Shown piece by piece: positions 966 through 45,359 of a stretch of 64,000 nucleotides of DNA (its first letter is position 1; each line of letters starts with the position of its first letter). Where the stretch lies: contig NC_043014.1 of the NCBI RefSeq assembly GCF_006345805.1, positions 6,634,001-6,698,000 on the forward strand, given 5' to 3'. Source of the stretch: Octopus sinensis (lineage: Eukaryota). The notes under the pieces were generated by a model. That model was not told where the DNA came from. It saw only the letters and a list, made by a program, of their open reading frames with translations, and did no database searches. The position numbers were made by a program, and so were the translations under genes.

Positions 966-1289
966 TACATGTGTGTGTGTATCTTTATGTCTGTGTTTGC
1001 CCCCTACCACTGCTTGACAGCTGGTGTTTATGTGTTTACATTCCCCGTAACTTAGCGGTCTGGTAAAAGAGGCCAATAGAATAAATACCAATCTTAAAAA
1101 TATAAGTACTGGAGTCATTTTGTTCGACTAAAAATTCTTCAAGACCCCAGCATGGCCGCAGTTTAATGACTGAAACAAGTAGAAGATACAAGATAAGCCT
1201 TCACTGAGAAAGACAACCGTAACTTCAATAATCTTCCCACAGAAGCGCCTAAGATAACAACTGTTTTCCCGAAAATGAAAGTAAAATTA

Positions 1290-1563
1290 AGAGAACCATC
1301 CGAACGTGTCCGTTGCCAGCCTTGCCTGGCCTCTGTGCCGGTGGCACGTAAAATCACCATCCAATCGTGGCCGTTTGCCAGCCTCGTCTGGCACCCACAA
1401 CACTCTTGCAGCGGTTGGCGTTAGGAAGGGCATCCAGCCGTAGAAACATTGCCAGCTCAGACTGGCCTGGTGCAGCCTTCTGGCTTCCCAGACCCCAGTT
1501 GAACCGTCCAACCCATGCTAGCATGGAAAGCAGACGCTAAATGATAATAATGACGATGATGAT
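1290..1563 (+). mobile_element. RTE 3' UTR fragment
   Basis: Same ggttggcgttaggaagggcatccag...ccatgctagcatggaaa...(tga)n tail as 820-965. Confidence 0.8.
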
Positions 1564-1639
1564 ATTTTTTCCTTTTTTTCGAATATTCTTTGTACTTAAA
1601 TTGAATATTGTTGACATCATATAATGTTTAAATTTAATA

Positions 1640-2034
1640 TCTTTATATATAAAAGTAAGGTTGTGTGTCTGTCTACTCCGATTTAGATTCCTAACTACTC
1701 CCACATTTTGCGGTGCAGTTTAGCCAAAACCGGGTATCTTATAGTCATGATTCATATCGAGCCCTTCTGGGTATTAGTGCGCGTCTACGATGAGTCTACG
1801 ATTTTAAAAATAATTTACCATAATTTTTTTCCATTTTAATGCATATTTTTTAAATATAAGGGAAGTAACTCTCTAAAAATGTCTATGATGAGTCAACGAT
1901 TAAAAAAAAAATTTACCATCATATTTTTTCCATTTTTAATGCATTTTTTTGCTATTTTTTGGCTATAACTCTCTAAAAATGCTTATATAGTTATTTCCCT
2001 TACAAACCCGAGCAACGCCAGGCGATACTGCTAG
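1640..2034 (+). mobile_element. Non-autonomous Helitron
   Basis: A|TC 5' end, subterminal hairpin cccgagcaacgccaggc, CTAG|T 3' end, no target-site duplication. Confidence 0.8.
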
Positions 2035-2251
2035 TATTTTATAATAAAGGTAGTATTTTGAATAGAGAAACAATAATGGTTTAAGATTTTGCCATTTTGT
2101 CACCAATAAAATGATTGGTTTCGAACTAATAAATAAGTAAAATAAAAGTTTAATGAAAAGGATTTAATCAGTTTAGTCACTGCTGAAGACTTTGTCTTGG
2201 TGTAGTACGGTGAATGATTAAAAAAAATTGAATAGAATCTATATATTTTAA

Positions 2252-2833
2252 CCCTTTAGTGTTTAAACTGGCCAAATCCGGCCCAATATATTCTACACTA
2301 GCAGTATCGCCCGGCGTTGCTCCGGTTTGTAAGGGAAATAACTATAAAGCATTTTCAGAGAGTTATAGCCAAAAAATGGCAAAAAAATTATGGTAAATTT
2401 TTTTTTAGTTAAAAAGGTCGAGTTGCGTCCCCTAGACAGTCTGTGATTTGTGTTTCTGATTCTCGACCCCATGTCGAATTTATCGATTTTTTTCAGAACT
2501 GGGGGAACTTTTCAAAATTTTCGCTGCGTTAGTTTTGAATTATGACATTGGGCTATGTGTGTGTCAAGTTTCATCAGAATCGGTTGAAAGCCGTGGTCAG
2601 GGTGAGGGTACAACCTAACAGACACACAGACACGCAGACAGACAAACTGCCATTTATATAGAGAGAGATATTTTATAATCAAACTGGCCCCTCAAACCTA
2701 ACCTACATTGACATTCAAAAAATAAATATTCACATCATTGAAACCTCAAAGCTATGAGATAATGCATGATTAATTCAAAACAATTTGAGTGAAAAAGTAT
2801 TACATTTAACAGAGTAATCTGAACACTAAAGGG
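2252..2833. mobile_element. piggyBac-type MITE with a nested Helitron (2298-2668, minus)
   Basis: TTAA target-site duplication (2248-2251, 2834-2837); inverted termini ccctttagtgtt / aacactaaaggg; nested element has TC...CTAG ends. Confidence 0.72.
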
Positions 2834-2847
2834 TTAAACAAGCTTAC

Positions 2848-2926
2848 CAGCCATAAGAAAACGTTCTACAGCCGCCTGGAAATTTTCCACTTGCTTAGAG
2901 CTGTTGCTTTGTAATCCAGAGTGAAT
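2848..2926 (-). CDS. Formin-like gene exon (FH2): [26 protein letters not shown]
   Basis: tcttcacag| acceptor, GCTG|gtaagc donor, 79 nt, phase 0-1; aligns with SSKEHxQPFKExMExF. Remaining exons were not found in the window. Confidence 0.78.
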
Positions 2927-5900
2927 CTGTGAAGAGAGAAACAAGAAGGGTTTATATTCATGAGTTCAAGGGTAATTTTGATGTTCTTTGAGACCCATCA
3001 TCCCCCATGTTAAACGTTGAAATTGAAACCGTTGCTGTTCGAGTTGAAATTTTATAAACCAATTACTGGAGAGGAAGACCCATATGGGATGGATATAAGT
3101 GAATGTGTCAAGAGGGGCTAAATTGATGAAATATGTCGTAATTAGTTCAAAGGATAGTTCATGAAAGAATTCTGGAAATTAAATTGCAATGAAGAAAAGG
3201 GAAGTTTCAAGCCTTTGTCATTTATTCGAGAGAGAGAGAGAAGAAAGAAAGAAAGCGGTATTGTTTTGGTTATAGGCTTTCTCTTCCAGAGAGACAGAGA
3301 CACAGACACAGAGAGGGAGAGGGAGAGAGAGAGAGACAGATAGACAGAGACAGAGAGAGAAACAGACAGAGACACAGGGAAAGAGAGAAAAAGAGAGAGA
3401 GGGAGAGGGAGAGAAGGAAAGAGAGTAAGACAGACGGACAGACAGGCAGACAGACAGACAGATAGACAGAAAGATAGATAGACAGACAGATAGATAGATA
3501 GATAGACAGACATACAGAAAGATAGACAGACAGACAGACAGATAGATAGATAGACATATAGATAGACAGACATACGAAAGATAGATAGATAGATAGACAG
3601 ACGGACAGACAGACATACAGATAGATAGATAGATAGACAGACAGAGACAGAAATAGAGAGAGAGAGAGAGAGAACTAGGCATAGGTAGGAATTATTTGGT
3701 AAGGATAATGGAAGGAAATATCTTAAGAATGCAACGCTTTGCGGGAACTGGAGCTAACATGATGATAATCTTCAAGTGAGAGATGCTTTCGTTGTATGAT
3801 GTCCCTTGTACACGGTGAACAGGACATTAAGAAACATGCATTCATATTGGTCAACAGATTGTTGATGGTTTATTGTCAGTCACATGAATATGCAAAGTAG
3901 ATACGCTTCGGACACGTTCTAATTGCACTGTAAGCAGACTCTCTGTAAAAACACATATTGGGTACAATCTGGGTAGTTTGTAGCATATTGACGAACAACG
4001 TGGATGCAGTAACATTTTAGAAACGAATGGGACCCGTGTCTGAACGTGTCAAAGTGCTGTCATCTGCCTGTTGGCTCTCCTCCTGCAACTCAACTTGATT
4101 TCGAGCCGGGTCGTCAGCTGCTGGAGAGGACCGATCAGGTAAAGGACCTGGGTATCTTGGTGGATTCCTCCTTTTCGCCTTCGGCCCAGTGCGTCCATGT
4201 TGCCAACAGCACGCGGAGTTCTGTTCTTGATTCGACGGTCATTCGGAATGCTCACAGCAGCCATATTCCTACCGCTCTATGTCACGCTGGTGAGACCCAT
4301 ATTGGAGTACGGGATTCAAGCCTCTTCTCCTTATCTCTTCAAAGACATACATCATCTCGAAAGAGTCCAGAAGCTGGCTACCCGCATGGTTCTTGGTCTC
4401 AAGCATTTGTCTTATAAAGAAAGGCTGAAGACGCTCGACCTTTATTGTCTAGAAAAACGATGCCGTTGTGATCTCATTCTTGCTCACAACATCATAAGCG
4501 GAAAGTGTAACCTCTCGAAAGAGCTGTTCTTCACTCCTGCTCCAGAGCGTCGGCTGCGGGGTCATTCCGAAAAGCTCTATCTGCGATGATTTCATCTCAA
4601 TCGAAGGAGAGGGGCTTTCTCCGTCCGGGTTGCGGATCCGTGGAATAAGCTGCCGGACGAGATAGTGAAGATGCCGACGACCGCTTGGTTCAAAGTCTCC
4701 CTTGACCACAAAAGGCCTGAACTCTTTACATGAACACCACCCTGCACATAACTCCATGTCCCCCTACATGGCCTTGCTTTTTGCTTTTTGAGCCAAAAAA
4801 TTAACTAACTAACTAACTAAGATGCTACGTAGATGCATTGTAAGTATAAGGTAACGAGTAATTAGAATGGAGAGAAAGACACATACCTTGTTGCGCATGT
4901 TAATGAGTTCGTTTTTCCATGAATAAAGACTTTTTGTCATATCATCGAAAGATACCTGAAGGCAGAAAACACATACATACAAATATAGAAACAATAAAAA
5001 CATACACACATACATGCAAATACGCACACTAAATGCACATAGTATGCACGCTACTCGAAAAAAGGCCGACAGAAATTTCTAAAAAATTCCATTATTGCCA
5101 TATTGGACTGATTTCAGGGTTAGTTCAAAAAGAACCCTCCTTTCGTCAGTGATGCCCATTCAAGACACGTGCGATTTTTAGCATATTTGGCATTAGAAAT
5201 TTTTTCGTTTGCCCTATAGATAGATAGTGCCACATAAAAAGCACTGGTCCTGGGGCCACATAAAAAGCACTGGTCCTGGGGCTACATAAAAAGTCACTGT
5301 TGTTGGTGCCACGTAAACGTATCCAGTACTCTGTAAAGTGGTTGGCGTTAGGAAGGGCATCTCGCTGTAGAAGCCAAGCCAAAACAGACTAAGGACCCTG
5401 GTGTGGTCCCTGGCCTTACCAGCTTTTGTCAAGCCGTCCACCACCGTCATCATCATCATCATCATCATCATTACCATCTTCATTGAATGTCCAGCATGGA
5501 AAACGGACGTTAAATGATGATGATGATGATGATGATAATGAACAGAATGGATATGAGGGTAGGAACTTACCTGAGATGCCTGCCGAAGCATAGCTGGGTT
5601 GGGAAATGGAAATGCTTTCATTGAATAGAAATCAGGTGTGTTTTCGTACGTCTGGCAGTAGACCATTATTATGTGTTCTAATAAATTTCTTTTGTTAAAC
5701 TGCAGAAAAAGAAAAAAACAGACCAAAATAAGTAGTATTTAGTTTTATTAGTATAAAGAGTATGGTTGTTTTCCAAACAATTCATTTAAATATTATATTT
5801 AAATCAACAACTTGTGGCTGTGTGGTAAGTAGCTTGCTAACCAACCACATGGTTCCAGGTTCAGTCCCACTGCGTGGCATCTTGGGAAAGTGTCTTCTGC

Positions 5901-6764: not shown

Positions 6765-9700
6765 CGACAGGCTTCTTTCAGTTTCCATCTACCAAATCCA
6801 CTCACAAGGCATTGGTCGGCCCGGGGCTATAGCAGAAGACACTTGCCCAAGATGCCACGCAGTGGGACTGAACCCGGAACCATGTGGTTGGTTAGCAAGC
6901 TACTTACCACACAGCCACTCCTGCGCCTATGTATATATATACACACATATATTCCACAGGCTTCTTTCAGTTTCCGTCTACCAAATCCACTCACAAGGCA
7001 CTGGTTGGCCCGGGGCTATAGCAGAAGACACTTGCCCAAGATGCCACGCAGTGGGACTGAACCCGGAACCATGTGGTTGGTTAGCAAGCTACTTACCACA
7101 CAGCCACTCCTGCGCCTATGTTTGTTTGTTTTTTTTGTTGATTTTGTTTTGTTTCTTTTTTTCTTACTTGGTATTCTATCATCATTGAAAAGGGGTAGAA
7201 ATTTATCCAAATTTCAAAAACGATAAACAGAACGATAAAAGAAAACAATTAAGCAAAATTAAAGAAATAAAGAAATATTTTTCGCGTTAATTCAAATAAC
7301 ATCAGAAAGGATTAAGATGTGTGGGGAAAAAAAAATACGAATGAATTTATCTGACAACCCAACATCAGTCAATTAAAAGATGTGTACGCCAAATTCACAC
7401 AGATGGGAGACGATGCACGTTTTATTTGCATAAAGATGGAATCACAATTTAATCACAAAGAAAAAAAAAACGGAGTGGCTGTGTGGTAAGTAGCTTGCTT
7501 ACCAACCACATGGTTCCGGGTTCAGTCCCACTGCGTGGCACCTTGGGCAAGTGTCTTCTACTATAGCCCCGGGCCGACCAATGCCTTGTGCGTAGATTTG
7601 GTAGACGGAAACTGAAAGAAGCTCATCGTATATATGTATATATATATATGTGCGTGTGTGTTTGTGTGTCTGTGTTTGTCCCCCTAGCATTGCTTGACAA
7701 CCGATGCGGGTGTGTTTATGTCCCCGTCACTTAGCGGTTCGGCAAAAGAGACCGATAGAATAAGTACTGGGCTTACAAAGAATAAGTCCCGGGGTCGAGT
7801 TGCTCGATCAAAGGTGGTGCTGCAGCATGGCCGCGGTCAAATGACTGAAAACAAGTAAAAAAAAAAAAAAAGATTAAACAGCAGACGGAGATGTGGGGGC
7901 AAGACACTCCAGAACAAATGGCCATCGTACATAGGCAACTCGCTGGGCCTCTGTAAAATAATCTTACTCGGACCAAAGTCTTGTTGAAGAGGTTTCCAGA
8001 TGCGGATTTAATGGCTTCATGAGACACGAAAGGAATTAGAAAGTCTAACCGATCCCCTTATAAGAAATACATACGCTAGTTTGGTTACTCGTGAAATGAT
8101 GAGGTTTGATTGATCGCCGACATAAATATCTTCACCTCTCGCCTGGCCCCCGTACCGGTGACACGTAAAAGCACCATCCGTTCATGGCCGTTTGCCAGCT
8201 CTGTCTGACACCTGTGCAGGTGGCACGTAAAAAGCACCCACTACACTCACGGAGTGGTTGGCGTTAGGAAGGGCATCCAGCTGTAGAAACATTGCCAGAT
8301 AAGACTGGAGCCTGGTGCAGCCTCCTGGCTTCCCAGACCCCAGTTGAACCGTCCAACCCATGCTAGCATGGAAAACGGACGCTAAATGATGATGATGATG
8401 ATGATGATGATATTGAATTCTTGCTTCGTAAAGTTTTGCTGTAGAATTTTGCTTCCGTCATGGAAGTGTCATACGTCGCTAAAATATTTGGCGAGGTGTC
8501 AGCTGGAATATATTTGGCGAAGAAAGTTTGGTGGTTCGTGTAAGTACGAATTTGCATAAGTTATCCAATAAGTATTTAGAATAAACTTCTTATGGAAACA
8601 CGTGTAGGGATACCCTGAAATTTCAATTCATTTTATTCTTATTTACTCTGTGTGTGTGTGTATGTGTGTGTGTCTGTGTGTGTGTGTGTGTGTGTTTCCC
8701 CCCACACCACCGCTTGATAACCGGTGTTGATGGCGGCGAGCTGGCAGAAACGTTAGTGCGCCGGGCGAAATGCGTAGCCGTTTTTCGTCTGTCGTTATGT
8801 TCCGAGTTCAAATTCCGCCGAGGTCGACTTTGCCTTTCATCTTCTCGAGGTTGATTAAATAAGTACCAGTTACGCACTGGGGTCGATATAATCGACTTAA
8901 TCCGTTTGTCAGTCCTTGTTTGTCCCCTCTATGTTTAGCCCCTTGTGGGTAGTAAAGAAATAGGTGTAGATTTGTTTACATGCTCGTAACTTAGTGGTTC
9001 GGTAAATGGCCCCGATAAAAAAAATGTACCTGGCTACTAATTAATAAGAACAAGAAGGGATTTCTTCAGCTAAACACTTTAAGACGGTTACTCCAGCATG
9101 GCCGCAGTCCAATGACTGAAACAAGTAAATAAGTAAATGACAAAAGATAAATGATAAAAGATGAAAGGTCTTTTATTTCTGACTTACTTTTGCGAAAATG
9201 TCTTTGAGATTTGGAAGAATGTCTAACAGGAAGCCGTTTGCTTGACCGAGACAAGAACCTCGGTTGAGATAGTTTCCAACGCTTACAATGGCACTCAGAA
9301 GATTCTTCAATGGTAAACTGAAACAGACAATGGGAATAGACGAATGGTTAATACAAATGCAAGAATAAACAGCTCCAAGAATTTCAGTAACATTTCTAAA
9401 ATAAACAAGAATTTTGAAAGATCTACTGAAATCACTCAAACGCATTTTATTTACTGGTAGGTTTTTTGTTGGGGTTTGGGTTGTCTTCTGCTATAGCCTC
9501 GGGCCGACCAAAGTCTTGTGAGTGGATTTGGTAGATGAAAACTGAAAGAAGCCTGTCGTATATATGTATATATCTGTGTGTGTGTCTGTGTTTGTCCTCC
9601 CAACATCGCTTGACAACTGATGTTGATGTGTTTACATCCCCGTAACTTAGCGGTTCCGCAAAAGAGTCCGATAGAATAAGTACTCGGCTTACAAAGAATA

Positions 9701-11325
9701 TGTCCTGGGGTTGATTTGCTTGACTAAAGGCGGTGCTCCAGCATGGCCGCAGTCAAATGACTAAAACAAGTAAAAGAATAAACGAGTAATTGAAACTGAT
9801 TAAATATTTTGTTGTCCCTGTACATACATACTCCTAGCTAGACTTATCCTATGAAAGTTTAGTGTTTTCGACCACGGACACAATGCGTTGATTGGTGGAG
9901 CATGCGAATTGTTGGTCCCTTGGTCCGTTCGTGGGTACCGAACTCTGTGAGACATACTAATTGTAAGTCCACTGGATATTACTGTCCCGAGACTGAGGAC
10001 TCATAGGTCCGGTTACCTGATTTCAAAGATGCATAAGTAAACAAGATCACAACATACCCGCTAAACGAGGCACCCGTCCGTCGCAGGGGACAACCATTTA
10101 GAGCTGAGTGGAACGGGACTGTAGCAATGTGAAACGAAATGTTTTGCTCACGAACAGGCGCAGGAGTGGCTGTGTGGTAAGTAGCTTGCTAACCAACCAC
10201 ATGGTTCCGGGTTCAGTCCCACTGCACGGCATCTTGGGCAAGTGTCTTCTGCTATAGCCCCGGGTCGACCAATGCCTTGTGAATGAATTTGGTAGACGGA
10301 AACTGAAAGAAGCCTGTCGTATATATGTATATATTTGTGTGTGTGTGTGTGTTTGTGTGTCTGTGTTTGTCCCCCTAGCATTGCTTGACAACCGATGCTG
10401 GTGTGTTTACGTCCCCGTCACTTAGCGGTTCGGCAAAAGAGGCCGATAGAATAAGTACTGGGCTTACAAAGAATAAGTCCCGGGGTCGATTTGCTCGACT
10501 AAAGGCGGTGCTCCAGCATGGCCGCAGTCAAATGACTGAAACAAGTAGAAGAAAAAAAAAGAAAGAAAAAGAACACGACTTTGTGGGTCGAAACCACGAT
10601 TCTGCAACCGTGAACGCGACGCTCTAACCACTAGACCGCGCGCAGTCACCAAGCAAATACCCTCTCTTTAGAAATGAGACAGTTCTTATAGTTTCTCAAT
10701 CGTTTTCTTTAAATATAGACCAAAAACGGTTTAGAAGAAATGTTATTTAGTCTCATACCTGTTGTATAATTCATCACATGCTGCGTGGACGGCTCGCAGG
10801 CGTTGGTCTGGAAAAGAAAGGATCAATCGTAAAATAGTCGAATGTGATTGATATAATAATTTGTTTTTAATTGAGGAACACGAACAACACCTTTGAGGAC
10901 AAGCGATGAATCAATATAATCGACCCTGGGATATGACTGGTAGTATATTTTAGCGACGTCGAAAGGATAAATAGCAATGATGATCAGGGTGGGATTTGAA
11001 CCTGAAGAGACGGAGTGACATGAGTATTTTTGCTCTAAGTACTGATGATTTCGCAAACTCGCCGCCTTATTGTTGACAAACCCATGCATGGTAACACACA
11101 CACACACACACACAAACACATATATACCCACACAAATGTATATTGACATGCATGCAGACACATATACATACACATACATACATACATACACACAAAAATA
11201 CCCTGTTGTTGATGTTGAAATTCCAGTGAAGGAACCTTGGATCTAGGTTAGAAACCGGTTCTTTCTCAATTGGCAAGAAATCTTGAAATAAACTGAATAA
11301 TGACATACATACATACATACATACA

Positions 11326-11359
<34 letters not shown>

Positions 11360-11862
11360 CATAGATATACATACATACACACACATACATACATACATAC
11401 ATAAATACATACATACATCATCATCATCGTTTAACGTCCGTTTTCCGAGCTAGCACGGGTTGGACGGTTCGACCGGGGGTCTGGTAATCCAGGACGCTGC
11501 ACCAGGCTCCAGTCTGATCTGGCAGTGTTTCTACAGCTGGATGCCCTTCCTAACGCCAACCATTCCGCGAGTGTAGTGGGTGCTTTTTATGTGCCACCTG
11601 CACAGGTGCCAAGGGGGTCTAGCATCGGCCACGATCGGTTGGTGCTTTTAACGTGCCACCGGCACGGAAGCCAGCCAAGGCGGCGCTGGCATCGGCCACG
11701 TTCAGATGGTGCTTTTTATGTTCCACTGGCACAGAAGCCATACATACATACATACATACATACATAAATACATAGATATACATACATACATAAATACATA
11801 GATATACATACATATATACATACATACATAAATACATACATACATAAATACATAGATATACA

Positions 11863-11896
<34 letters not shown>

Positions 11897-12354
11897 CATA
11901 CATACATAGATATACATACATACATACGTACATACACACTTACAAACATATACAGATGCATGAACGGTGGAGATCCTATAAGAAAACAATAATTGTAAAT
12001 AACTATAACAACAATAACAACAACAACAACAGTAACAGTGAGTCGTGAAGGCCACATACGAACCTGTTTCAAACATTTCTGCCAGTAGTCTTAGCTTGAA
12101 GCGAAGAAAGTCTAACCGTTCCCGTAACAATTCCATACTTGAAAGTTCCGACATGAGGTAATCCGAGCAGTTGATTGGTGCTGAAATAAATAGCATTGTT
12201 TTAAAGTTATCTCTGTGGATATTCTGTAGAATTTAGAGCCTGCACAGAAAGTTACGATGGTTCGTATGCGAATATCTCTCAATGTAAACAATGCGATCGA
12301 AGATAGAAAAATTAGATAATGAGTGTATATGAATATTTCACGAGTATACATGTA

Positions 12355-12395
<41 letters not shown>

Positions 12396-12650
12396 ATGTG
12401 TGTGTGTGTGTTTGTTTGTATTTATGCATAAGTATATATATATATATATGTGACCTCGTGAGTACCACCGGTGATTTTTTTTCCCTCTGTCTTCCCTTCT
12501 CGGGATCTTTCCTTCTCCTATGTTTCCAACAAAGAGCTCCACTCGAAACGTTAAACCCTCCTTCTTTCCTTCTTTCCTGAGCGTCCAATAATACTATATT
12601 TGTTCCACGTCCTCGCGTTGTTGTGTTTTTTTGTTTTCTTGTTTGGATTA

Positions 12651-12694
<44 letters not shown>

Positions 12695-15453
12695 GCTCTC
12701 ATTGCTTTCTGTCGAAGAGCGTAGGCTCGAAACATCAAAAAAAACTTTTCTACGCTTTCCGAATCTGAAACTAATACACCTGCTTTGTCTCACCTATGTT
12801 CGTCTTTTGTTTTCTATAAATTTGAACTATATAAATATATGTGGGACAGGTTTCTTTCAGTTTCCATCTATCAAATCCAATCACAATTCGGCTTGGAGCT
12901 AGAGTAGAAGACTCTAATCAAGGTGCCATGTAGTGGGACTGAACCCGGAACCATGTGGTTTGGAAGTAAACTTCTTACCACACAGTCATGTTATATGTTT
13001 ACATGTAAGACAAGTGTCAACACATCACATATAACAATGAAACAGTATAGTGAATATTGGTTAGAGAAAAGAAACCGGTATGTAAAGATACTTACAATTG
13101 GATATTTGCCTGTCTCTTCTGTTGATTTGTTCAGGGTCTCTTCCAGTTGACATCAGGTGAAAAAGCTCAGCTAAACTGCAAAATAAGATTACAACTATTT
13201 TAATTTAATCAGTGTAAGGATTCTACGCGGACGTTATACCTGCCAAAAATGGTAGCAAATTTAATGAAGGAGCCAGTCCTGATTTGATTAGACTTGGAGC
13301 TCCGAAATACTCGCAGGGCACAATATGTGTACAAATGGTCCTAATACCATGAAACGTGATTCTTAGGTATGCTTAGGTATCGATTAATTAATTATGAGAT
13401 AATCAACTTGCGTAAATAACTAATTTAATAAGACTTTAAGCTCCAGTAATGAATCACATTGAATATTACTCTTTAGACACAAGTGATATTTAAATGAAAA
13501 CTTAAGAAAAAGAAAACGGGTATGGAAAGACAAATTAAGAAGTTTTAATTAGACACTTAATTAGAAATTAAGTAGACTTTCTGCTCCAGCGTCAATTACT
13601 TCGCAGAAATGTTCACTAAACCTAACTGAATCTATTCATGTCACTTAAGAACCATTTTAGGTATGCTTTGCCAGTATTTTTGGCACTTCAAGTCTAATCA
13701 AATCAGGACTGGCTCTCGGTCTAATTCTGCAACGAATTCCAACTTGGTGTCTTATGAAAAAGAAAAAAAAAGTAAACTGGAAATGATAAGAGAGTCGCTG
13801 TAGGGATATCTTTGATTATAAATGTTTGCTTGATCAGGCCTAAGTTGGGGTCAACGATAACAATGGGGATGACAAGATTAATATAAACCGAGATGACAAT
13901 GAATTTCAACTAATTAACATCTGTTGTTCGACTTTGACTAATTAACGTCAGTTGTTCGATTTCGACCAATTAATGTCATTTGTTCGATTTCGACCAGTTA
14001 GTGTCAGTTGTTCTATCAACTAGATGACCTACTCCCTAAATTTATGTACAAAGGGGCTGAGTATTCCATGGACAGTACACCATTAAAGTAATTTTCAAGT
14101 AGAGTCAGTGTATGACAGTCTGACAAGGCTGGGTCTTTCAGCTACAAGATACAGTCCATTTGACAGACTTCCACACAGTTTCCGTCTGTCTAAGTTCACT
14201 GACAATGTTTAACCCGACCCGAAGCTACGAAAAAAGACATTTTCCCAAGATGCTACACAGTGGAATTGAACTTGGGATCAGATGGTTTTGAAGTGAATCT
14301 CCTAACCATCCAGCCATACCTTTTACTCAATGTATCACAAGGTCCAGTCCTTGTTATGGTGTGGTGTCTTGGGTGCCACAGTGACCATGAGAGTTATATC
14401 AGCGGAGTATAAGCTACTGAGCAGTTCAAAGGGTAGAAGCCAAACTAATATAAACCACCTCTTCTCAGATATAAAAATGGGTTTGCAGAAGGCAATGGTC
14501 CTACCTATGAAAAAAGTAAAATTAAAGAAGCATTGATGGGAATTCAAAGTAGCATGAACTGGGAGAAGAAGGCCTTTGCTCAAAGAAACATATGATGCGA
14601 TACAGCAAAATAAACTAGCATCCTGCGCTTCATATCAAGTACTGACCTGAAACCCACAGAGAAGGCAGAGAAAGTAGGTACAGGTGGGATACTGAGGCAA
14701 AACTGGAAAAACAGGGATCCCAACATGAGGGAAGAAAATACAGTCCAGAGTCGAAAAGTCATCGATGGTCAATGCTCACTAGCGTAGCTAGGGGTGGGAG
14801 AGCAGTAGAGGCAGTCCGACCCAGGTGGCACTTTTCATCCTGCCATAGGTTATTGCTAGAGGCAATATATCTTTTTTGTGGGGTACAGGGGAGGCAAACG
14901 AAAGGGCTGCGCCGGGCGGCACACACTCTAGCTATGCTAGTGACTATGCGCCATAGGAAGCGAAGAGCATAGCTTACAACACTACAAAAGGAGAAGCAAA
15001 AACTGAAAAGACATACGTATACACACACACACATATATATACATATATATACATATATATATATATATATACAAAGCTGAAGTTGTCTGTGTGTGGTAGG
15101 TTTGGTAGCCTTCAACTAACACCATCTCCTCCGAGACCCTGCAGTGCAAGTTGACCAAAATGATAGAAGAAGGCTTGCTCTTCATTCCGTAGAAGACAAA
15201 AATCAAATTGGACCATGTTAACATCAAAAATTATTTACATCAAAAAGGTGCTTTTTTTCTATGAAAATCCCTATTTTTTACGATTTTTTTACTGCTGTGT
15301 CGCCATTTTTCGGTGTATTTCAACCAGAAAAATGTTCACTTAAAGAGAATAACAAGCTACATAATGCAAAATTTTTACTTTTCAAAAATTCCAATTCTAA
15401 AGGGTCGAAACGAACCCGAGCAACGCCAGGCAATACTGCTAGTATATACATAT

Positions 15454-15485
<32 letters not shown>

Positions 15486-15800
15486 TTCAGTTACATATAT
15501 AGATATCGCCGCATTATCATTATATATGTGAGCGTGCGTGTGTGTCCGCGTGTATGTATGTATATGTACATGTAAGAGACAAGGAGAGAGAGCAACTGTT
15601 TGTATTGTCCAGTTTGCATAAAGAATGAAATTACCTGATAGGATTTGCGAACCGTAGGGTCTCTATTGATAGGGTCAACAAAGCTTGGACTATGTCCCCA
15701 TAGGTACACTTGATTTGTTTCATGTGTAGGACCATTTCTTGATTCTTCACCGGATCCAAGGTTGAGCTCAACTGTAAGATTAATAAATATATGGACAGTG

Positions 15801-16969: not shown

Positions 16970-19900
16970 AACGGACGGACGGTCAGGCAAGCAGACAGAC
17001 AGACAGATAGATATACATACATATATATGTATGTATGTATATGGATCATAAATCTTACTGATATTTCAAAAATTTCCACAGCTAAAATATGAACATCGTT
17101 GTCTATATAATCATTACATACATACAATTAAGTATAATGAAGAAGAAGAAGAAGAGAAGAAGAAGAAGAAGAAGAAGAAGAAGAAAAAGAAAAAGAACAA
17201 CAATAACAACAACATCATCATCATCATCGTCGTCATCAATAACAACAGACAAAAGATAACAAAAGAATTGTTTATAAAAACGGTGAGTCTCAGTGTGCGC
17301 AGACAGGCAAAGACCTCACAGATGGGATAAAGGTTTAATTTAAGAACTGGAAGACTTACATGAGATTTCCGGGACCGACAGCGGTAGCAAATATCATCGT
17401 ACAAGTTTTGAATGGAAGAAGAGGACTTTTGCGAAGATTTTTCAAAAAGTCTATATATATATAAAGAAAAAATAAATAAAATTAAAACTAAGATATATAG
17501 AGTCAAGACTATTGAAAAGGTTGCAAGACGCAATTTTAGGTAAATATAAATAAGAAAAAAAAGTGGAAATTTTACCGGTGAGTGTGTTACATTATAAGGC
17601 ACAAAAAGAAAATGACTCTCCCCAGACACAACAGAATATGCTTCAACACACAAACTCACATAAAGAATCTTGCAAAGCAAATCTCAAAACGAAATATATA
17701 TACATACATACACACACACACACACTTACAGACAATTTCGAGTTAACTAAACACTTTAAAACTTCGTATACTGGTAGAATGTGTCAAAATAAAACATTTT
17801 TTTCTCTTGGCTTTCTTGAGAAAATTGTAATTTGTTTGTTTAACGTAGTTTAATTTTTCGAATTTTAACCAATCCTATGCTCTCTTTTGAGCTAAAATCA
17901 TTTGCTGCGTCTAAAACTGAGACAACATCCTGTAACTAACCCTAAACCTCCCCCTAACCCTAACCCTAAATTTTTTTTTCTTAATTGTTAAATTAATTAA
18001 TTGTTACGCGCGTAAAAAAACTAAAGCATGGAATTAAATTAATTTAACAATTAGAAAAAAAAATAGGGTTAGAGTTAGGGGGGAGGTAGGTTTAGTTACA
18101 GGAGTTTGTCTCAGTTTTAGACGCAGCAAATGATTTTAGTTGAATGGAGGTAATCGATTGGTTAAAATTGCCGAAATGCTCGTATTTTCAGACAAAATAT
18201 CTTACAAACTATAGAATTTTCTCAATAAAACCAGGAGAAAATGATGTTTTATAAACACATTCTACCAGTATACGAAGTTTAAAAGTGTTTAGTTAACTAG
18301 AAATTGTGTTGACATGTGCCGTTCAAAAGGAAAAGATCCAAGTGGTGTAGTTACCTATCGAGTTCACAAGTGTCAACTTCTGTTTCCGCCAATGTATTCC
18401 AGACAACACTTTTGGAATTATTGTTGTCTGCAAAAAAAAAAAAAAAAAAAAAATCAACAACAATAATAATAATGATGACAATTGGAAAAATGCTTTTATG
18501 GTTACTAAGGACGACGACGACGGTGACGACAAGAAGAATAACATCAAAAAATGTGCAACAACAGGTTTAATAAACCTTGCTGGTAACGGACTGAAGAAAT
18601 GCTTTGTAATGTAACGTGTAATGTTGCTCTGACACAGGGGCTTGGAAACATGAGTCAGCAACAAAATTTTAGATTCTGGGCCAATAGGTGACCCGCCCTC
18701 ATAGAATTAAATAGTAGCAATTTTTTTCACATTAGTTGTACGATACGGTCATAGAAAGAGAAGGATACAATGGCCGTAGTGTAAATAATATAACGTATTT
18801 GATCTTTGCATTGTTCGATCACAGGTTATTTATATCATGCTCTATATTGCATGTAGGTCATGCTTTATACACACACACAGAAACATATATCGGTGCTTCG
18901 TTGTACCATTCATTTACTTTTATGTATAATTTTACCCTCACAGGCTATCCTTTACTGGAAAGCAATACTCTCGTATTGCATTACTATTTTCATTGAAACT
19001 TCTTCACTGTTCTCGTTCTGTTAACATTTTGGCCTTCAGACGAGTGTACTGGCATAGATGTGGCAACATTTGAAATATTGTCGAGGTATATGCAGCTGAT
19101 GAAGATAAATCAAATATACGTTTGGCAATCGTATTTTGAAGAATCCGAAACCGGTACTGCATTATCCATTATCTAGGTTTTTCATTTTTCAGATGTTCTT
19201 CCTAGAGGTAAGACAATTTTTTTCATGTTTGTTGCACACACGCATCTTTGCTAGTACATACGCAGTGAAGCTATACATTAGTGTCGTATTTATTACGTTC
19301 GCTATTTTCCAGTAAATATCAGTACTTCGTTGTACCATTTATTTACTTTTATATATATATATATATATATATATTATATTAAATTAGAGACAAAACCACT
19401 ATTATGCAAATCAAACAAAGAAAGACTTAAGCCAATACATAAAATAATTTATATAAATTTAGAAATTTAACAATTATAAATAACCACTACGATCGTTTCA
19501 TGTCTTATTTCAGCACATCTTTGAGACATTCTTCAGGTGGTTTCAAAACCTAAAATATAATCAATATTTTTAAGATATAAATAATCTATATAATCTAAAT
19601 AAAAATTTACTTATAATAAACTCTATTATTAAATATGATTATATTGATTATATATATTATTATATATATATATATATATGATTATATATATATATATATA
19701 TATGTATGTATAAGAGTGTAGTATATTGCTTATAGAAATACATATTGAATACATATTTTTTCAGCATTATCATTATCATCATCATCGTCGTCGTCGTCAC
19801 AACCCTCGCACTCAACAAAGCAACAGCAGTAGCCATAGCAGCAGCGATTTCTGCATAATTAGCAATTCACGTTACCTGGATTTGTAACAACTTTTTGCCA

Positions 19901-21800
19901 AGGAAGCTGCACCAGTTTCACTTTGGCGGAGTGCATCGGTTTACTGGAGTCGCCTCCCTTGACCAGCTGGTCCGTGCGAGGAGGAAGAGGCGGTGGAGGC
20001 GTGGGTGTAGTCGTATGGGAAACGCCGTAACCGGGAGCAACCTCACCATCAACCATTGCATCGTTCGCTGTAGAAAGATGGAGAGAAAGGGAGAAACAAA
20101 GAGATAAAATGATAAAAATACATATACAAAGAAATACATAAATATATATAGGCGCCGGAGTGGCTGTGTGGTAAGTAGCTTGCTTATCAACCACATGGTT
20201 CCGGGTTCAGTCCCACTGCGTGGCACCTTGGACAAGTGTCTTCTACTAAAGCCTCGGGCCGACCAAAGCCTTGTGAGTGGATTTGGTAGACGGAAACTGA
20301 AAGAAGCCCATCGTATATATCTCTTTCTCTTTTCTCTTTTTTACTTGTTTCAGTCATTTGACTGCGGCCATGCTGGAGCACTGCCTTTAGTCGAGCAAAT
20401 CGACCCCGGGACTTATTCTTTGTAAGCCCAGTACTTATTCTATCGGTCTCTTTTGCCGAACCGCTAAGTGACGGGGACGTAAACACACCAGCATCGGTTG
20501 TCAAGCAATGCTAGGGGGACAAACACAGACACACAAACAGACACACATATATATATACGACAGGCTTCTTTCAGTTTCCATCTACCAAATCCACTCACAA
20601 GGCATTGATCGGCCCAGAGCTGAACCTGGAACCATGTGGTTGGTTAGCAAGCTACTTACCACACAGCCACACCTGCGCCTAACATATGTATATGTTAGTT
20701 AGTTAGTTAGTTAATTTTTTGGCTCAAAAAGCAAAAAGCAAGGCCATATAGGGGGACATGGAGTTATGTACAGGGTGGTGTTCATGTAAAGAGTTCAGGC
20801 CACTTGTGGTCAAGGGAGACTTTAAACCGAGCGGTCGTCGGCATCTTCACCATCTCGTCCGGCAGCTTATTCCTTGGATCCGCAACCCGGACGGAGAAAG
20901 CCCCTCTCCTTCGATTGAGATGAAATCGTGACAGATAGAGCTTTTCGTGTGTGTGTTTGTGTGTCCGTGTTTGTCCCCCTAGCATTGCTTGACAACCAAT
21001 GCTGGTGTGTTTATGTCCCCGTCACTTAGCGGTTCTGCAAAAGAGACCGATAGAATAAGTACTGGGCTTACAAAGAATAAGTCCTGGGGTCGAGTTGCTC
21101 GATTAAAGGCGGTGCTCCAGCATGGCCGCAGTCAAATGACTGAAACAAGTAAAAGAGTAAAAGAGTATATTGTGATATTTGGGGGTGGTCATATTTGGGT
21201 TTTTTTTTTTTGCTAATTAACCACCCTTTGAAATTATCAATGTCCTAAGTGTGAAACAGCAGCAAGATATGGCAAATGAATGCCTTTATTGAGACCTGCT
21301 GAAGGCTAGTGAGAAGATTAGGTTAAAGACGGCTGTGTATATCTGGTCACTGTGCACCGGAAGCATCCAGTGACTCTCTGGTCACTGCACCACCCTGCAC
21401 TGGATGCACCCAAATTAAGGTAAGGTAAAATTACATTGTCGAGTCATGCCGACGCCAACTCATAAGGGCCGGTTTCCCGGTTTCCATGGCGCATAAATTC
21501 TTGGGTGGATGGGTGGATGGGTGGATAGATGGATGGATGGGTGGATGGATGGATGGATATTCTGCGTATAGAATACCCTTCGTAGTATCCAAGAGATTTA
21601 ACCCTGAGCAGGTAGAGGGGTAAATGAAAGGACAAGCAAACTTAGACAAGTCAATATTCAAAAAATATTAAATATTTTTAATACAAAAAAAGTGTACATA
21701 TGTTAACATATACAAGTGTCCGACATACACAAAACAGAATTTTTTTCCCTTATCCTTAATTGTTTTATGACCTCTCCTTACTTACCACAACACATAGCCT

Positions 21801-21874
<74 letters not shown>

Positions 21875-21992
21875 GACGATGATGACGATGATGATGGTGG
21901 TGATGACGACGATGATTATGGTGATGATGGTGGTGGTGGTAGTGGTGGTGGTTGTGATGATGATGATGATGATAATGGTGATGATGACGATG

Positions 21993-22024
<32 letters not shown>

Positions 22025-22100
22025 GATTATGGTGATGATGGTGGTGGTGATGATGATTATGGTGATGATGGTGGTGGTGATGATGATTATGGTGATGATG

Positions 22101-22132
<32 letters not shown>

Positions 22133-25100
22133 GATTATGGTGATGATGATGATGATTATGGTGATGATGGTGGTGGTGATGATGATTATGGTGATGATGG
22201 TGGTGGTGGTAGTGGTGGTGGTTGTGATGATGATGATGATGATAATGGTGATGATGACGATGATGACGATGATGATGATGGTGATGATGATGATGATGAT
22301 GGTGATGATGGTGATGATGGTGGTGGTGATGATGATTATGGTGATGGTGATGATGGTGATGATGGTGGTGGTGATGATGATTATGGTGATGATGGTGGTG
22401 GTGATGATGATGATGATGATGGTGATGATGGTGATGATGACATTTGAACGCACATAGCGGTGCCCTATGCATGGTCACAACTTAAGTTAATCTTGAAATA
22501 ACCTTCCTGCAGGGTGCATTGTGATATTGGCTCATAAAGTCCTTTAAAGGACCAGGCAGGAGTCAAATATACAGTTATGGCTTCACAGCCCGGGGCCCTC
22601 GGTATGGAGCCAAGGCAGTAAGAGTAGGACATGTTATGAAGTCATGGTATAGACAGACTTGAAGGCGGCGAGCTGGCAGAAACGTTAGCACGCCGGGCGA
22701 AATGCTTTGCGGTATTTCGTCTGCCGTTACGTTCTGAGTTCAAATTCCGCCGAGGTCGACTTTGCCTTTCATCCTTTCTGGGTCGATAAATAAAGTAATA
22801 AATAAATAAAACATATGCATATATACATACATATATGTACGTACCCACATTTACATGTATATATACATGCATATATGGTACCAGTTACGCACTGGGGTCG
22901 ATATAATCGACTTAATCCCTTTGTCTGTCCTTGTTTCTCCTCTGTGTTTAGCCCCTTGTGGGTAGTAAAGAAATAGTTATTTCGTCTGCCGCTACGTTCT
23001 GAGTTCAAATTCCGCCGAGGTCGACTTTGCCTTTCATCCTTCCGGGGTTGATAAATTAAGTACCAGTTACGCACTGGGGTCGATTTAATCAACTTAATCC
23101 GTTTGTCTGTCCTTGTTTGTCCCCTCTGTGTTTAGCCCCTTGTGGGTAGTAAAAAATAGATATATACAGACTCACCTTGCAGTGCATGTCGCATGGCAGT
23201 ATTTTGTAAGTGCATCGACGGATGTTGCTGCAGCTGCAGCTGTTGTTGTTGTTGTTGTTGCTGCTGCTGCTGCTGCTGAAGAGCTTTCCCCGGAAGTACT
23301 CCGTAGGTAACAGATTTGTTACTCGAGTTCTCCAGCATCTCGGCAATGTTGTGCAGCTCATGCATTTTCGTCATGAGTTTACTGATTCGATCCTCATAAG
23401 TCCGCAGCACGCGCTGGTGTTCCCTCTTCATCCGGTTCATCTCCTCCATCAGCTGCTTCTCGTTGTCCGAATACGAAGAACAGGGGTCAGCACATCCCCA
23501 ATTTTTCATCCCACTCTGACTTTGGTTGCCGTTCATAACAGCCTCGAAACAGCTGTTACCAATATTTTTGTTGTTGTTGTTGTTGTTGTGATCGTTGTTT
23601 TTACTGTGGTGAGGATTGTGGGGATGGTGGGGATGGTTTGTGAAAGCAGTGGTGGTGGTGGTGGTTGTGGTGGTAGTAGCGGTGGTGGTAGTATTTGCGT
23701 TGGCGATCGTGGTGTTAGCATGAATGCTGTGGTTGTTGCAAATGTTATGTTTTTTGTAAGCCGTTAACTCACAATCATCGACACAGGCACGGAATACCTG
23801 AAATAAATAAATAAATAAATAAAAGAAGAAAAGGAAGAACAACAACAACAAGTACAAGAAGAAGAACAACAACAAGTACAAGAAGAAGAACAACAACAAG
23901 TACAAGAAGAAGAACAAGTACAAGAAGAAGAACAACAACAAGAAGTACAAGAAGAACAAGAAGAACAAGAAGAAGGAGAAGAAGAAGAAAAAGAAGAAGC
24001 ACAAGAAGAAGGAGAAGGAGGAGGAGGAGAAGAAGAAAAAGAAGAAGCACAAGAAGAAGGAGAAGGAGGAGGAGGAGAAGAAGAAGAAGAAGAAGCACAA
24101 GAAGAAGAAGAAGCACAAGAAGAAGAAGAAGAAGAAGAAGAAGAAGAAGAAGAAGCACAAGAAGAAGAAGAAGAAGAAGAAAAAGAAGAAGAAGAAGAAG
24201 AAGAAGAACAACAACAACAACAACAACACCATCAACAACATTAATAATAATCCATTCTACTAAAGGCACAAGGCCAGAAATTTGGGGGAGGGGTATAGTT
24301 GATTGCATTGACCCAAGTGCATAACTGGTATTTATTTTATTGACCCCGAGAGGATGAAAGGCAAAGTCGACTTTCACGGAGTTTGAACTTAAAGATGGAC
24401 CAAATACCTATTTCTTTATTACCCACAAGGGGCTAAACACAGAGGGGACGAACAAGGACAAACATAGGTATTAAGTCGATTACATCGACCCCAGTTCGTA
24501 ACTGGTATTTAATTTATCGACCCCAAAAGGATGAAAGGCAAAGTTGACCTCGGCGGAATTTGAACTCACAACGTAACGCAGACGAAATACCGCTAATCAT
24601 TTCGCCCAGCTTGCTAACGTTTCTGCCAGCTCGCCATCTTTTCATGGCTTCTAATCTTAACTGATTGGAAGTGTTATTATGTACATTGTTTTGTCTTGGT
24701 ATAAAAGATGGGCTACAGCAAATATTCTGCTCAATACCACAGACTTGCTTGTCAGTTGTTTGACCTTAACCAGTTGATTATGTCCCTTGGTGACTGACAA
24801 TATTCAACACCCAAAAGGTCCGGTCTAAAAGTAGAAACGGTGGAACTGATCCTCGCTGCACAAGATTAATGTGTTAATAATGTTATCACAAGCACAAAGA
24901 CATACTCTTTCTTTTCCATTTCTCTTCTGCAGCTACTTCGATGGCCGCTGCTCTTCGAGACTAACAAGCTACTTAACATAATAATAAAATCTAGGAAAGG
25001 ATGAAGACAAACCAACGTACGGAAAAGAGGAAAAATCTCACAATCAATGTGGACACAGTCAACCCCCAATATCATTTATCAACCAGAAATTATTACAGTT

Positions 25101-28100: not shown

Positions 28101-31100
28101 GTAAATGTAATTAAAAATTTAAGGACTTATTAATCCACTGTTCTCACTTACTGAGAAAAACATTTGTAAAATGTTTTGCTCATACATAATTAACTCATAC
28201 ATAATTAACCTCATACATAATTAACTTACATAAGTATAAATAAGATTAATGCTTACAATCTCTTAATATAGATTCTCCCTCCTTCTTTATTTATATATAA
28301 TATACTAAATACTCCTTTCGAAACTAATTTTTAATCTTTATCTAATATTCAACAATTGCACATAATTTAATACATATAAGAGGGTACATAAATTTACATA
28401 GTTAAATATATATATATTATATATATATATACTCTTTTACTCTTTTACTCTTTTACATGTTTCAGTTATTTGACTGCGGCCATGCTGGAGCACCGCCTTT
28501 AGTCGAGCAAATCGACCCCGGGACTTATTCTTTGTAAGCCCAGTACTTATTTCTATCGTCTCTTTTGCCGAACCGCTAAGTGACGGGGACGTAAACACAC
28601 AAGCCATCGGCTGTCAAGCATGCTAGGGGGACAAACACAGACACACAAACACACACCATACATATATATATCTATATACATATATACGACAGGCTTCTTT
28701 CAGTTTCCGTCTACCAAATCCACTCACAAGGCATTGGTCAGCCCTGGGCTATAGCAGAAGACACTTGCCCAAGATGCCACGCAGTGGAACTGAACCCGGA
28801 ACCTAGTGGTTGGTTAGCAAGCTACTTACCACACAGCCACTTCTGCGCCTAACTGAATTTCTTTTTAATTTTGTTAACCTAATATTTACTGAACTGACTT
28901 ATAAATTTACACACATTTATTGCATACTCAGTTGAACTTTCCTCTATTCTCTCTTTTACAAGAGACTTTAAAATATCACCCTTATAAAGATTGGGCAGCT
29001 AAAAAATATATTGTGTAGTTGTTTCCCTCTGTTCTGTTCTCACGGATTAACACGCTCCTAAACTTGTTGGCATTTTGACCTCACAGGACTGTAAACTTGG
29101 CAAGAATATCTTTATATATAAAAATTAGTTGTGTATCTGTCTCCTACATTTAGATTCCTAACTACTCCACATTTTGTGGTTCAGTTTAACCAAAAGCAAG
29201 TACCTTATAGTCGTGATTCATATCGAGCCCTTCTGAGTATTAGCGCGCGTCTACGATAAGTCTACAATTTTAAAAAAAATCTACCATAATTTTTCCGCAT
29301 TTTTAATGCATTTTCGCTCGGTTTATATAAGGGAAGTAACTCTCTAAAAATGTATTATTAAATCTCAGAACGTAAAAAGCTACAGTAACACCCCCCCCCC
29401 CTTTGTGGTTAGCCATACTGAGATGGCTATTATACTTTACATCTCTAAAAATGCTTATATAATTATTTCCCTTACAAACCCGAGCAACGCCGGGCGATAC
29501 TGCTAGTGATAAATAAAAGAGGGTAATTTGATACGACAGTTATCCACAGTCCACCTTCACAACTATCTTTTCTAGGAAACTTTGGAAATCTATCACAACA
29601 ATTTTAAGGTATGAAGAGAAAGGATGAGGACTAATTATTTTGTTAATTAATTGATTGATTGATTATGCATACAAACTATTGTGCTCTGAGGAGACAGTTT
29701 CACTTGCTATTTGAAACATTCGTAACATTGAATAAAGTTATGTAATAGCGTAATCTTTATTTACTTGTCTTATTGGTCTGTGTGTGTGTATGTGTGTGTG
29801 GTACATGCATACATACGAGGTCTGATCAATAAGTATCCGGACTGTTGTCATGGTAACGAAGCTAAAGCACGCAGAGTAAAGCCGCTCAGTAAAACTTGAC
29901 CTCTGTTGTGCATGCACACTAAGTTTTAACATTCTAACTCACTTCCCCTGTTTACAGCAGTGCTAGGAAGGAATGTGTGTAGCGTTGATCGTCGCATGGA
30001 CCATGACAGAGGAAGCTGTCATGGCGAAACCGGCTCAGAGGCTTACACAAAGTTGCAGAAAGTGTATGGAGAGGAGTGTATGGAGAGAAATGTATGGAGA
30101 GGAGTGTATGAGCGGTACACAAGTGTACGGGTGGTTCAGACGTTCCCAAGATGGCCGAAAAAATGCCGATATTGACGATCGTTCTGGGAGACCAGCAGCC
30201 AGGAGAACAGAGAAGAAATATCGCAGATGTATGTGCAGCTGTGAGAGAAAATCATCGAATCACCAACCGTGAGATATCAGAGGATGTACAGATTAGTTAC
30301 GGTTCAACTCAGTCCATGATCACTGAAGATTTGGGTATGAGACGCGTGTCTGCCAAGTTTGTGCCAACACTGCTTTCAGCTGACCAAGAAGACCCTCGGG
30401 TTTCAGTTGCACAAGATCACCCTGATTGTGTCGAGAACGATGAAAACCTTTTTGGAAACTTTGTGTAGGCCTCTGAGCAGGTATCACCAAGCTTTTGGCA
30501 AAATTCGATGCAGATTCTCTGCTCTACTTTCTCCGTTATGGTCAATGCAACGAGCACACGCTACACACCTTCCTTCCAAGCACTGCTGTAAATAGTGGAA
30601 GTGAGCTGGAACGTCAAAACTTAGTGTGCATGCACAGCAGCGTTCAAGATCAATCTGTGCCAAGCGGTTTTACTCTGCATACTTTAACTTCGTTACTATG
30701 GCAACAGTCCGGATACTTATTGATCAGACCACATACACATGTGTGTGCGCATGTGTCAGTGTGCGTGCATGTGTCCGTGTATTTGTGTGTGTGTGTATTT
30801 GTGTGTGTGTGTATGTGTGTGTGTGTGTATGTGTGTATGTGTGTGTGTGTGTGTGTGTGTGTAGCTAAGGGAATTGTAAATATTTCAAAGAAATTTGTGT
30901 TTTACCTGAATATGCTTGGTGTGTGGGTCTCCACAGCTATCAGTGGGTGAATTCGAACTTGAAACCCCTCCGATGCTTAGTAATTTATTCCGAACGTCTT
31001 CGACGAACTGAGCGTTAACATTCATTCGATTGTCCGAAGGGGTCTGTAGGTTTCTGCTATATTGATTGTCTGTGTTCTGAGACGTTGTCGACCGAGAATA

Positions 31101-45225: not shown

Positions 45226-45359
45226 AATGAATCGACTTGCACGACTTGCACCCTCCCCAGAAATTGCTGGCCTTGTGCCAAAATTTACAACCAGTATTTA
45301 CACTTGTACGATGTTTCGATCTGATTGTTTTAATTATAGGTTTTACTTTATATTTCCAG

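Follow-up and report, generated by a model that had tools for sequence, protein, structure and literature searches.

An FMN-related formin gene of Octopus sinensis from a conserved mollusc family with a DEP-like domain and variable residues at two canonical actin-contact columns

The window considered here is a stretch of 64,000 nucleotides from Octopus sinensis (contig NC_043014.1, positions 6,634,001 to 6,698,000 of the forward strand), composed of repeat-rich eukaryotic DNA with a guanine–cytosine content of 33–45%. Its minus strand harbors a formin gene, which extends from 31.4 kb or higher to below 4.9 kb and most likely runs off the window start; 12 exons of this gene have been mapped, and neither a stop nor a frameshift was seen in them. 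Within the window, the gene appears intact. The encoded protein features a DEP-like domain, a coiled coil, one PPPLPPR motif, and an FH2 domain of the FMN type, a layout representing a new formin architecture. In the FH2 domain, the two columns canonically occupied by an actin-contacting Ile (in the knob) and Lys (in the post) hold Leu and Phe, respectively. Judged by its sequence, the gene is a member of a conserved, uncharacterized FMN-related family of molluscs, and this family spans at least the cephalopod-like, gastropod, and bivalve lineages.

The exons were rebuilt by hand from the minus strand and then checked by tblastn against a limpet relative, Patella P0129 (Table 1). The ten FH2 exons, denoted A–J, are linked by canonical GT-AG sites in matching phases and yield an open frame of 355 residues; the donor of the coiled-coil exon (CAAG/gtgagt) is in phase 1, which fits exon A. 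Exons A–H alone form an open frame of 289 residues matching the Pfam FH2 model with 120 bits (model positions 3–236), whereas the complete set A–J scores 138.4 bits (PF02181, E 4.5e-40, positions 3–292 of 372, cut-off 34.8), so exons I and J raise the score. No further FH2 exon was found in window positions 1–4884 with the hidden Markov model (HMM) of the family, and a relative (contig L007) has three more exons. Hence, the gene most likely extends past this end of the window.

Table 1. Exons of the formin gene and motifs within them (window coordinates; a slash marks the exon–intron junction)
Feature	Position	Strand	Splice sites and homology
DEP-like domain exon	30906..31439	-	acceptor ttttcag/GCT, donor CAG/gtaaaa; tblastn with P0129: 52% identity, E 2.7e-15
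Coiled-coil exon, then coding polyglutamine tract	23176..23593 (upper coordinate approximate)	-	tblastn with P0129: 56% identity, E 2.8e-26
Coiled-coil segment (columns 359-415 of alignment A3)	23282-23480	-	
Coding polyglutamine tract	~23270-23200	-	
Exon A: proline motif (minimal FH1) and first lasso Trp	19876..20067	-	
Proline track TPPPPLPPR	19996-19970	-	
Val codon (GTG) four residues before first lasso Trp	19912-19910	-	
First lasso Trp, LPWQKV	19906-19889	-	
Exon B: second lasso Trp, SKSVVWNTL	18355..18427	-	
VVWNTL	18407-18390	-	
Exon C: linker	17360..17450	-	
Exon D: knob helix	15635..15771	-	
Knob string quoted in the first-pass annotation	15750-15721	-	
Leu codon (CTA) in the canonical Ile column	15729-15727	-	
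Exon E	13096..13175	-	
Exon F: family signature	12064..12180	-	56% identity to P0129
Exon G	10759..10807	-	
Exon H: post motif VGNYLN	9188..9317	-	donor AAA/gtaagt
GNYLN	9277-9263	-	
Post string quoted in the first-pass annotation	9217-9188	-	
Phe codon (TTC) in the canonical Lys column, Lys at +2	9196-9194	-	
Exon I	5571..5699	-	tblastn with P0129; clean splice sites, phase fits
Exon J: last FH2 exon found in the window	4887..4955	-	tblastn with P0129; clean splice sites

In phmmer searches, the FH2 domain of the window protein matched the solved structures of DAAM1, mDia1, INF2, FMNL3, and Bni1. The Leu of EMVLHM in the knob faces the conserved Ile of the DAAM1, mDia1, and INF2 chains (NCNILL, NLSIFL, and NLNIFL), and the Phe of KDIF in the post faces the Lys of the “(D/E)TK” motif of the same chains; when 22 other FH2 domains were aligned with it in MAFFT, both residues fell in the identical columns. 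At both sites, the alignments to DAAM1, mDia1, INF2, FMN2, and the limpet relative are free of gaps. Once exon I is included, “KD” and the “LL” that follows it are spaced as in FMN2 (P0186) and in the limpet relative; hence, the Lys column is indeed occupied by Phe, and no gap rescues the Lys. The Phe codon is at least two base changes away from Lys, so a single-base error is ruled out as the cause. The knob helix is of full length and likewise aligns without gaps. An AlphaFold2 model of the Patella FH2 domain made without an alignment reached a predicted local distance difference test score (pLDDT) of only 39.5, was unusable, and was discarded.

The first-pass annotation of this DNA had described an FMN-like FH2 domain with intact lasso tryptophans and GNYLN, in which Ile is replaced by Leu in the knob and Lys by Phe in the post. 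Both descriptions hold: the lasso and post strings (LPWQKV, VVWNTL, and VGNYLN) were found on the minus strand and align with those of other formins, i.e., the dimerization features are kept, and the alignment to solved chains agrees with MAFFT on the two columns, leaving Leu and Phe in place of Ile and Lys. The FMN strings quoted for comparison match real FMN2 (P0186; the published alignment). The span given there, 9188-15771, coincides with the outer limits of the knob and post exons; both lasso motifs lie outside it.

A third deviation from the canonical pattern was found in the vicinity of the lasso. In both the phmmer and the MAFFT alignments, the residue located four positions ahead of the first lasso Trp is Lys or Arg in other formins; the window protein has Val at this position and a Lys at -6. 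The position is presumably that of K1359 in Bni1. In the latter protein, K1359, I1431, and K1601 are named actin-binding residues (PMC3192862); I1431 is the conserved knob Ile, at which the window protein has Leu, and K1601 is the conserved post Lys/Arg, at which it has Phe.

The relatives of the gene were recovered by several searches. With exon H as the only query, an exhaustive phmmer search matched 32 proteins, including P0129, which is annotated as “uncharacterized protein LOC126815870” of Patella vulgata (XP_050397830); a word-based search with a patchwork of exon fragments yielded no match. P0129 possesses a full FH2 domain (196 bits) and a sub-threshold DEP match. In the aligned columns, its identity to the window protein is 45%, both sites being free of gaps, and the two proteins have the signatures LH(T/A)ACDE, SL.LKNLL...VGNYLN, and GQA.GF.LDIL..LKD in common. 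A profile of these two proteins retrieved P0162 (hypothetical protein BaRGS_011649 of Batillaria attramentaria) and ca. 25 open reading frames (ORFs) of 300–380 residues, in each of which a DEP-like domain is combined with the same coiled coil. The FH2 exons of further relatives were taken from the contigs encoding such ORFs (L001–L009); the searches yielded no cephalopod ortholog of the FH2 domain. The family signatures are also present in Crassostrea gigas LOC105320770 and Lottia gigantea LOTGIDRAFT_237086, which the supplementary alignment of Pruyne (2016, PMC5047451) places among the rows of the FMN subtype. In the same work, a node splitting the FMN homologs of molluscs, annelids, and cnidarians into two groups was noted and left unexplored; the family described here gives content to this second FMN subgroup.

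Outside the family, FH2 domains of the FMN type come closest (25–32% identity) and lead both the BLASTP and the profile ranking. In the profile search, FMN2 scored 164 bits vs. 75 and 60 bits for the next families; both this similarity ranking and the rows of the published alignment put the family next to FMN1, FMN2, and Cappuccino, that is, within the FMN subtype. The FMN2 sequence of alignment A1 served as a search seed only; a profile combining it with DAAM1, mDia1, and INF2 returned only INF2 proteins, which are useful solely as an outgroup. The canonical FMN proteins (FMN1, FMN2, Drosophila Cappuccino, and C. gigas LOC105332220) share GQADGF.LDILPKLKD with the window family and, like it, possess an N-terminus which is not Diaphanous-like (“X-FH1-FH2”). 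Still, they differ from it in several respects. The canonical proteins keep the Ile (AVGILM) and the Lys (KDVKS), whose columns vary in the window family; in place of a single proline track they have several, and their short tail carries a Spire-binding motif, whereas the tail of the window gene lies off the window; and they lack the DEP-like domain and the conserved coiled coil of the mollusc family. Most likely, the family arose as a second FMN paralog of molluscs. Molluscs retain a canonical FMN paralog with both Ile and Lys (C. gigas LOC105332220 and L. gigantea LOTGIDRAFT_159891), so the second copy would have been free to diverge.

The window protein and its mollusc relatives (Patella, Batillaria, Crassostrea, and Lottia) have in common the motifs RERL(D/E)FLRFK, QQLRELHTACDE, SL.LKNLL..L..GNYLN, and GQADG(F/Y).(L/I)(D/N/H)(I/V)L(N/P).LK(D/E), the exon boundary that follows the post motif, and non-canonical, variable residues in the Ile and Lys columns. 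The DEP-like domain, the coiled coil, and the single PPPLPPRP are common to the window protein and the relatives whose N-terminus is known. Among the members seen, the window protein diverges the most, its FH2 domain being 38% identical to those of two gastropods, which are 54% identical to one another; no other member combines Leu and Phe at the two sites. In addition, the DEP-like and coiled-coil parts of the window gene are at least 7 kb of intron apart, whereas in many relatives a single ORF holds both.

The N-terminal domain of the window protein matches the Pfam DEP model with 23.3 bits (E 6.3e-5), under the gathering score of 32.7. Its relatives score 27.5–31.6 bits, and five family members fall between 23 and 32 bits, all slightly short of the gathering score. 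When 21 relatives were combined into a profile, it matched only DEP domains in the PDB, with DEPTOR (5e-5) and P-Rex1 (5e-3) followed by pleckstrin-2 and DVL2. The AlphaFold2 model of the domain comprises three helices and a short hairpin, with a core pLDDT of 85–90; the top Foldseek match of this model, although weak (E 2.6), is the DEP domain of DVL2. The domain is therefore termed here DEP-like. The literature search returned no description of a formin with a DEP domain, and only papers on Dishevelled and DAAM surfaced. The coiled-coil segment is the most conserved part of the protein, ca. 80% identical to that of the limpet and with nearly invariant columns in the 21 relatives; it looks like a binding or dimerization module. 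The proline track of exon A is the only one found in the window protein. The relatives keep it as PPPLPPRP(G/S)RG ca. 20 residues upstream of the lasso, at a fixed distance (at ~12.1–13.2 kb in contigs L002–L006). This motif agrees with the PxxPxR consensus of class II SH3 ligands and is equally compatible with a profilin site.

The two actin-contact columns vary widely across the family. The Ile column, occupied by Leu in the window protein, holds Val in Patella, Ala in Lottia and L002, Thr in Batillaria, Phe in Crassostrea, Glu in L001 and L004, and Ile in L003. In the Lys column, the Phe of the window protein is matched by Ser in Patella, Thr in Lottia, Val in Batillaria, L009, and P0127, Gln in L002, L007, and P0141, Leu in P0130, Arg in L001, and Lys in Crassostrea and P0149. 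Thus, Leu and Phe belong to a trait of the family and do not represent a lesion of one gene. Outside the family, the knob Ile is kept in ca. 100 FH2 domains of the FMNL, FHOD, PHCF, and FMN types in the published alignment block, with FOZI-1-like proteins as the exceptions, and the same column in 20 other FH2 domains aligned with MAFFT holds Ile in 18 cases, Val in one, and Met in one (P0132, P0126).

Despite the variation at these columns, strong purifying selection acts on the FH2 exons of the family. L001 and L002, compared over 154 codons from three of these exons, differ with a pN (proportion of non-synonymous differences) of 0.092 and a pS (proportion of synonymous differences) of 0.84, the latter being saturated; in the knob exon of L001 vs. 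L004, the non-synonymous (dN) and synonymous (dS) divergence amounts to 0.006 and 0.148, respectively (dN/dS ~0.04). All three sequences in these comparisons (L001, L002, and L004) bear Glu or Ala at the Ile column. Such selection is indicative of a working, not a decaying, domain. L001 and L004 are different contigs of one sample (ERZ25073814) with nearly identical knob exons; they correspond either to recently duplicated copies of the family gene or to divergent haplotigs.

An explanation of the odd residues as the decay of a pseudogene or as an error of sequencing or assembly is very improbable in our estimation and largely refuted. The location of the 3' end of the FH2 domain outside the window would be compatible with it, but the gene displays 12 open exons with canonical splice sites and matching phases, and its identity to the limpet orthologue extends along the protein length. 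Moreover, the distance of the Phe codon from Lys mentioned above speaks against this explanation, as do the like substitutions in the independent assemblies of the relatives.

The surroundings of the two columns display a regular pattern, sampled in 8 knob and 13 post sequences. Around knob column 0, the family conserves Arg at -3, Ile or Val at -2, Met at +2, and Arg or Lys at +3. Knob column -1 holds a small residue in canonical formins (G, S, N, or A) and a bulky hydrophobic one in the mollusc family; the oyster is an exception, but here column 0 itself is Phe. As a result, every family member sampled has a bulky hydrophobic residue at column -1 or 0. In the post, every member without Lys at column 0 has Lys or Arg at +2, L001 bearing Arg at both positions, whereas the two that do have this Lys show Ile at +2. 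Since a hydrophobic residue at knob -1/0 and a basic one at post 0/+2 are always kept, the actin contacts may have been displaced by one or two residues instead of being lost. Accommodating this pattern, the interpretation favored here, to which we would assign roughly even chances, is that of a functional, non-canonical formin with re-registered actin contacts.

Under this interpretation, the FH2 dimer would still engage actin via the re-registered surface of the knob and post. Its barbed-end activity would probably be altered, likely being weaker or slower than that of the canonical FMN formins, and the delivery of profilin–actin would be minimal, as only one proline track is present. The DEP-like domain and the coiled coil could supply membrane or signaling targeting as well as extra dimerization.

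Several considerations weigh against the re-registered contacts. In Bni1 and Delphilin, the mutation of the Ile to Ala abolishes actin assembly (PMC6004577), which makes the natural Ala, Glu, and Thr at this column of the relatives remarkable. Furthermore, a neighboring hydrophobic residue points ca. 100 degrees away on a helix and may be unable to substitute for the Ile. The idea of a shifted register has been derived from sequences only, 8 for the knob and 13 for the post, and the last ~80 positions of the FH2 model, together with the tail, lie outside the window.

The same substitutions at the Ile column, which is unconstrained in the family, are one argument for regarding the whole family as true pseudo-formins, a possibility we hold tentatively and consider less probable than re-registered contacts. 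According to it, the FH2 domain dimerizes but no longer nucleates or caps actin and is kept for another job. The Lys column is likewise unconstrained, the window gene and several relatives lack the basic residue located four positions ahead of the first lasso Trp, and a single proline track is left. The FH2 domain is also the least conserved recognizable module of the protein (38% identity to Patella vs. ~80% for the coiled-coil core), the reverse of the situation in usual formins. This scenario must, however, accommodate a knob helix that is well conserved near column 0 and is under purifying selection, the invariable retention of the hydrophobic residue at -1/0 and of the basic one at 0/+2, the Ile of L003, and the Lys of the oyster. 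The location of PPPLPPRP at a fixed distance from the FH2 domain, consistent with profilin delivery, is also at odds with it.

A precedent for such a repurposed formin domain is accepted for Caenorhabditis elegans FOZI-1 and its relatives, in which a divergent FH2 domain is kept without the canonical knob contact. In FOZI-1, however, the knob region is truncated, whereas the knob helix of the window protein is full-length and conserved around column 0. FOZI-1 is derived from FMNL, carries zinc fingers in its N-terminal part, and shares nothing else with formins, FH1 included; the window protein has a DEP-like N-terminus and PPPLPPR instead, so none of the three hallmarks of FOZI-1-like proteins (the truncated knob, the N-terminal zinc fingers, and the absence of FH1) was found in it. 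It is conceivable, if doubtful, that a selectively maintained family of DEP-domain formins has dropped the canonical barbed-end mechanism, becoming a pseudo-formin with an intact knob. The jobs proposed for it, with the same reservation, include those of a scaffold, a microtubule or filament-side binder, and a heterodimer partner of canonical FMN. Equally tentatively, its reuse might comprise membrane- or receptor-linked scaffolding, binding to microtubules or filament sides, and regulation of the canonical FMN paralog. The first-pass annotation had proposed a candidate pseudo-formin with weak or no nucleation. The non-canonical nature of the formin is supported, whereas the weak or absent nucleation and the pseudo-formin part of that proposal keep the status of a hypothesis. 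Its reasoning is also modified: the replacement of Ile by Leu alone is conservative, and the weight of the argument rests on the family-wide variation at both columns.

The conservative nature of this replacement raises the opposite question of whether the protein is an ordinary, fully active formin of the FMN type, in which Leu is as good as Ile and the Lys at +2 replaces the canonical Lys. Val and Met found at the Ile column of other FH2 domains (P0132, P0126) are in line with such tolerance, as is the Arg at the post of fission-yeast For3. Delphilin (GRID2IP) is also informative here: it is a non-Diaphanous formin in which an N-terminal signaling/targeting module (PDZ, in place of which the window protein has the DEP-like domain) precedes FH1-FH2, and its post Lys is largely dispensable, the K868A mutation being mild (PMC6004577). 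On the other hand, Delphilin represents another FH2 subtype than the window protein, and it keeps the Ile and depends on it (I718A is dead). Taking into account the relatives with Glu, Ala, or Thr at the Ile column, the retention of Ile in the ca. 100 animal FH2 domains of other subtypes, and the distinct N-terminal domains, single proline track, and long tail of the family, an ordinary formin seems unlikely, more so than a pseudo-formin.

In the formin field, the knob Ile is deemed near-invariant and the post Lys highly conserved, and the Ile-to-Ala mutant is the standard “dead” control. Here, in a whole animal family, the Ile column is naturally occupied by Ala, Glu, Thr, Phe, Val, or Leu, and yet strong purifying selection acts on the FH2 domain. 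If the favored interpretation of re-registered contacts is true, a shifted register is tolerated by the FH2–actin interface, which bears on the docking of the knob in the actin cleft. The alternative outcome would be that FH2 dimers have a conserved function that does without this interface.

The introns of the formin gene are filled with a recurrent short interspersed repeat starting with (CAT)n (e.g., at ~8400-8100, 5450-5200, 1600-1300, and 1000-600, with many other copies) and with a second repeat type. A stretch at 8614-8400 was considered as a broken next exon after exon H, as it encodes formin-like peptides in two frames, with two in-frame stops and a 26-bp direct duplication. This candidate was rejected and the stretch assigned to an intron: tblastn puts the true next exons at the positions of exons I and J, and adding the stretch did not raise the Pfam score. 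The intronic region 8380-8640 thus mimics a formin exon in two frames and contains a direct repeat with 26-bp spacing (8481-8494 and 8507-8520), with no support from the relatives. Similarly, exon-like readings at 8057-7968, 5160-5050, 3950-3880, and 3290-3100 are unsupported by the family HMM.

Two more low-complexity tracts of the minus strand flank the coiled-coil exon, lying between it and exon A or immediately ahead of it. The tract at 21800-22450 (21.8-22.4 kb) reads as very long poly-His/Asn and poly-Ser/Pro runs, depending on the frame, with stops in frame, and is likely an intronic microsatellite; that at 23800-24250 (23.8-24.3 kb) reads as a very long poly-Lys/Glu run, again depending on the frame. 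ORFs resembling transposon remnants occur at 30151-30468 (plus strand), with a weak helix-turn-helix match, and on the minus strand at 4800-4000 and 63057-63695, both without a Pfam match at E 0.01 or better. A second gene is situated on the plus strand, where exons of a Na+/phosphate cotransporter (SLC34-like) were recognized at 45227-46000 and 51829-52677. The Pfam Na_Pi_cotrans model scores 48 bits on the ORF at 51.8-52.7 kb and 19 bits on the piece at 45.3 kb, and long microsatellite tracts coding for Ser, His, and Ile lie between the two pieces.

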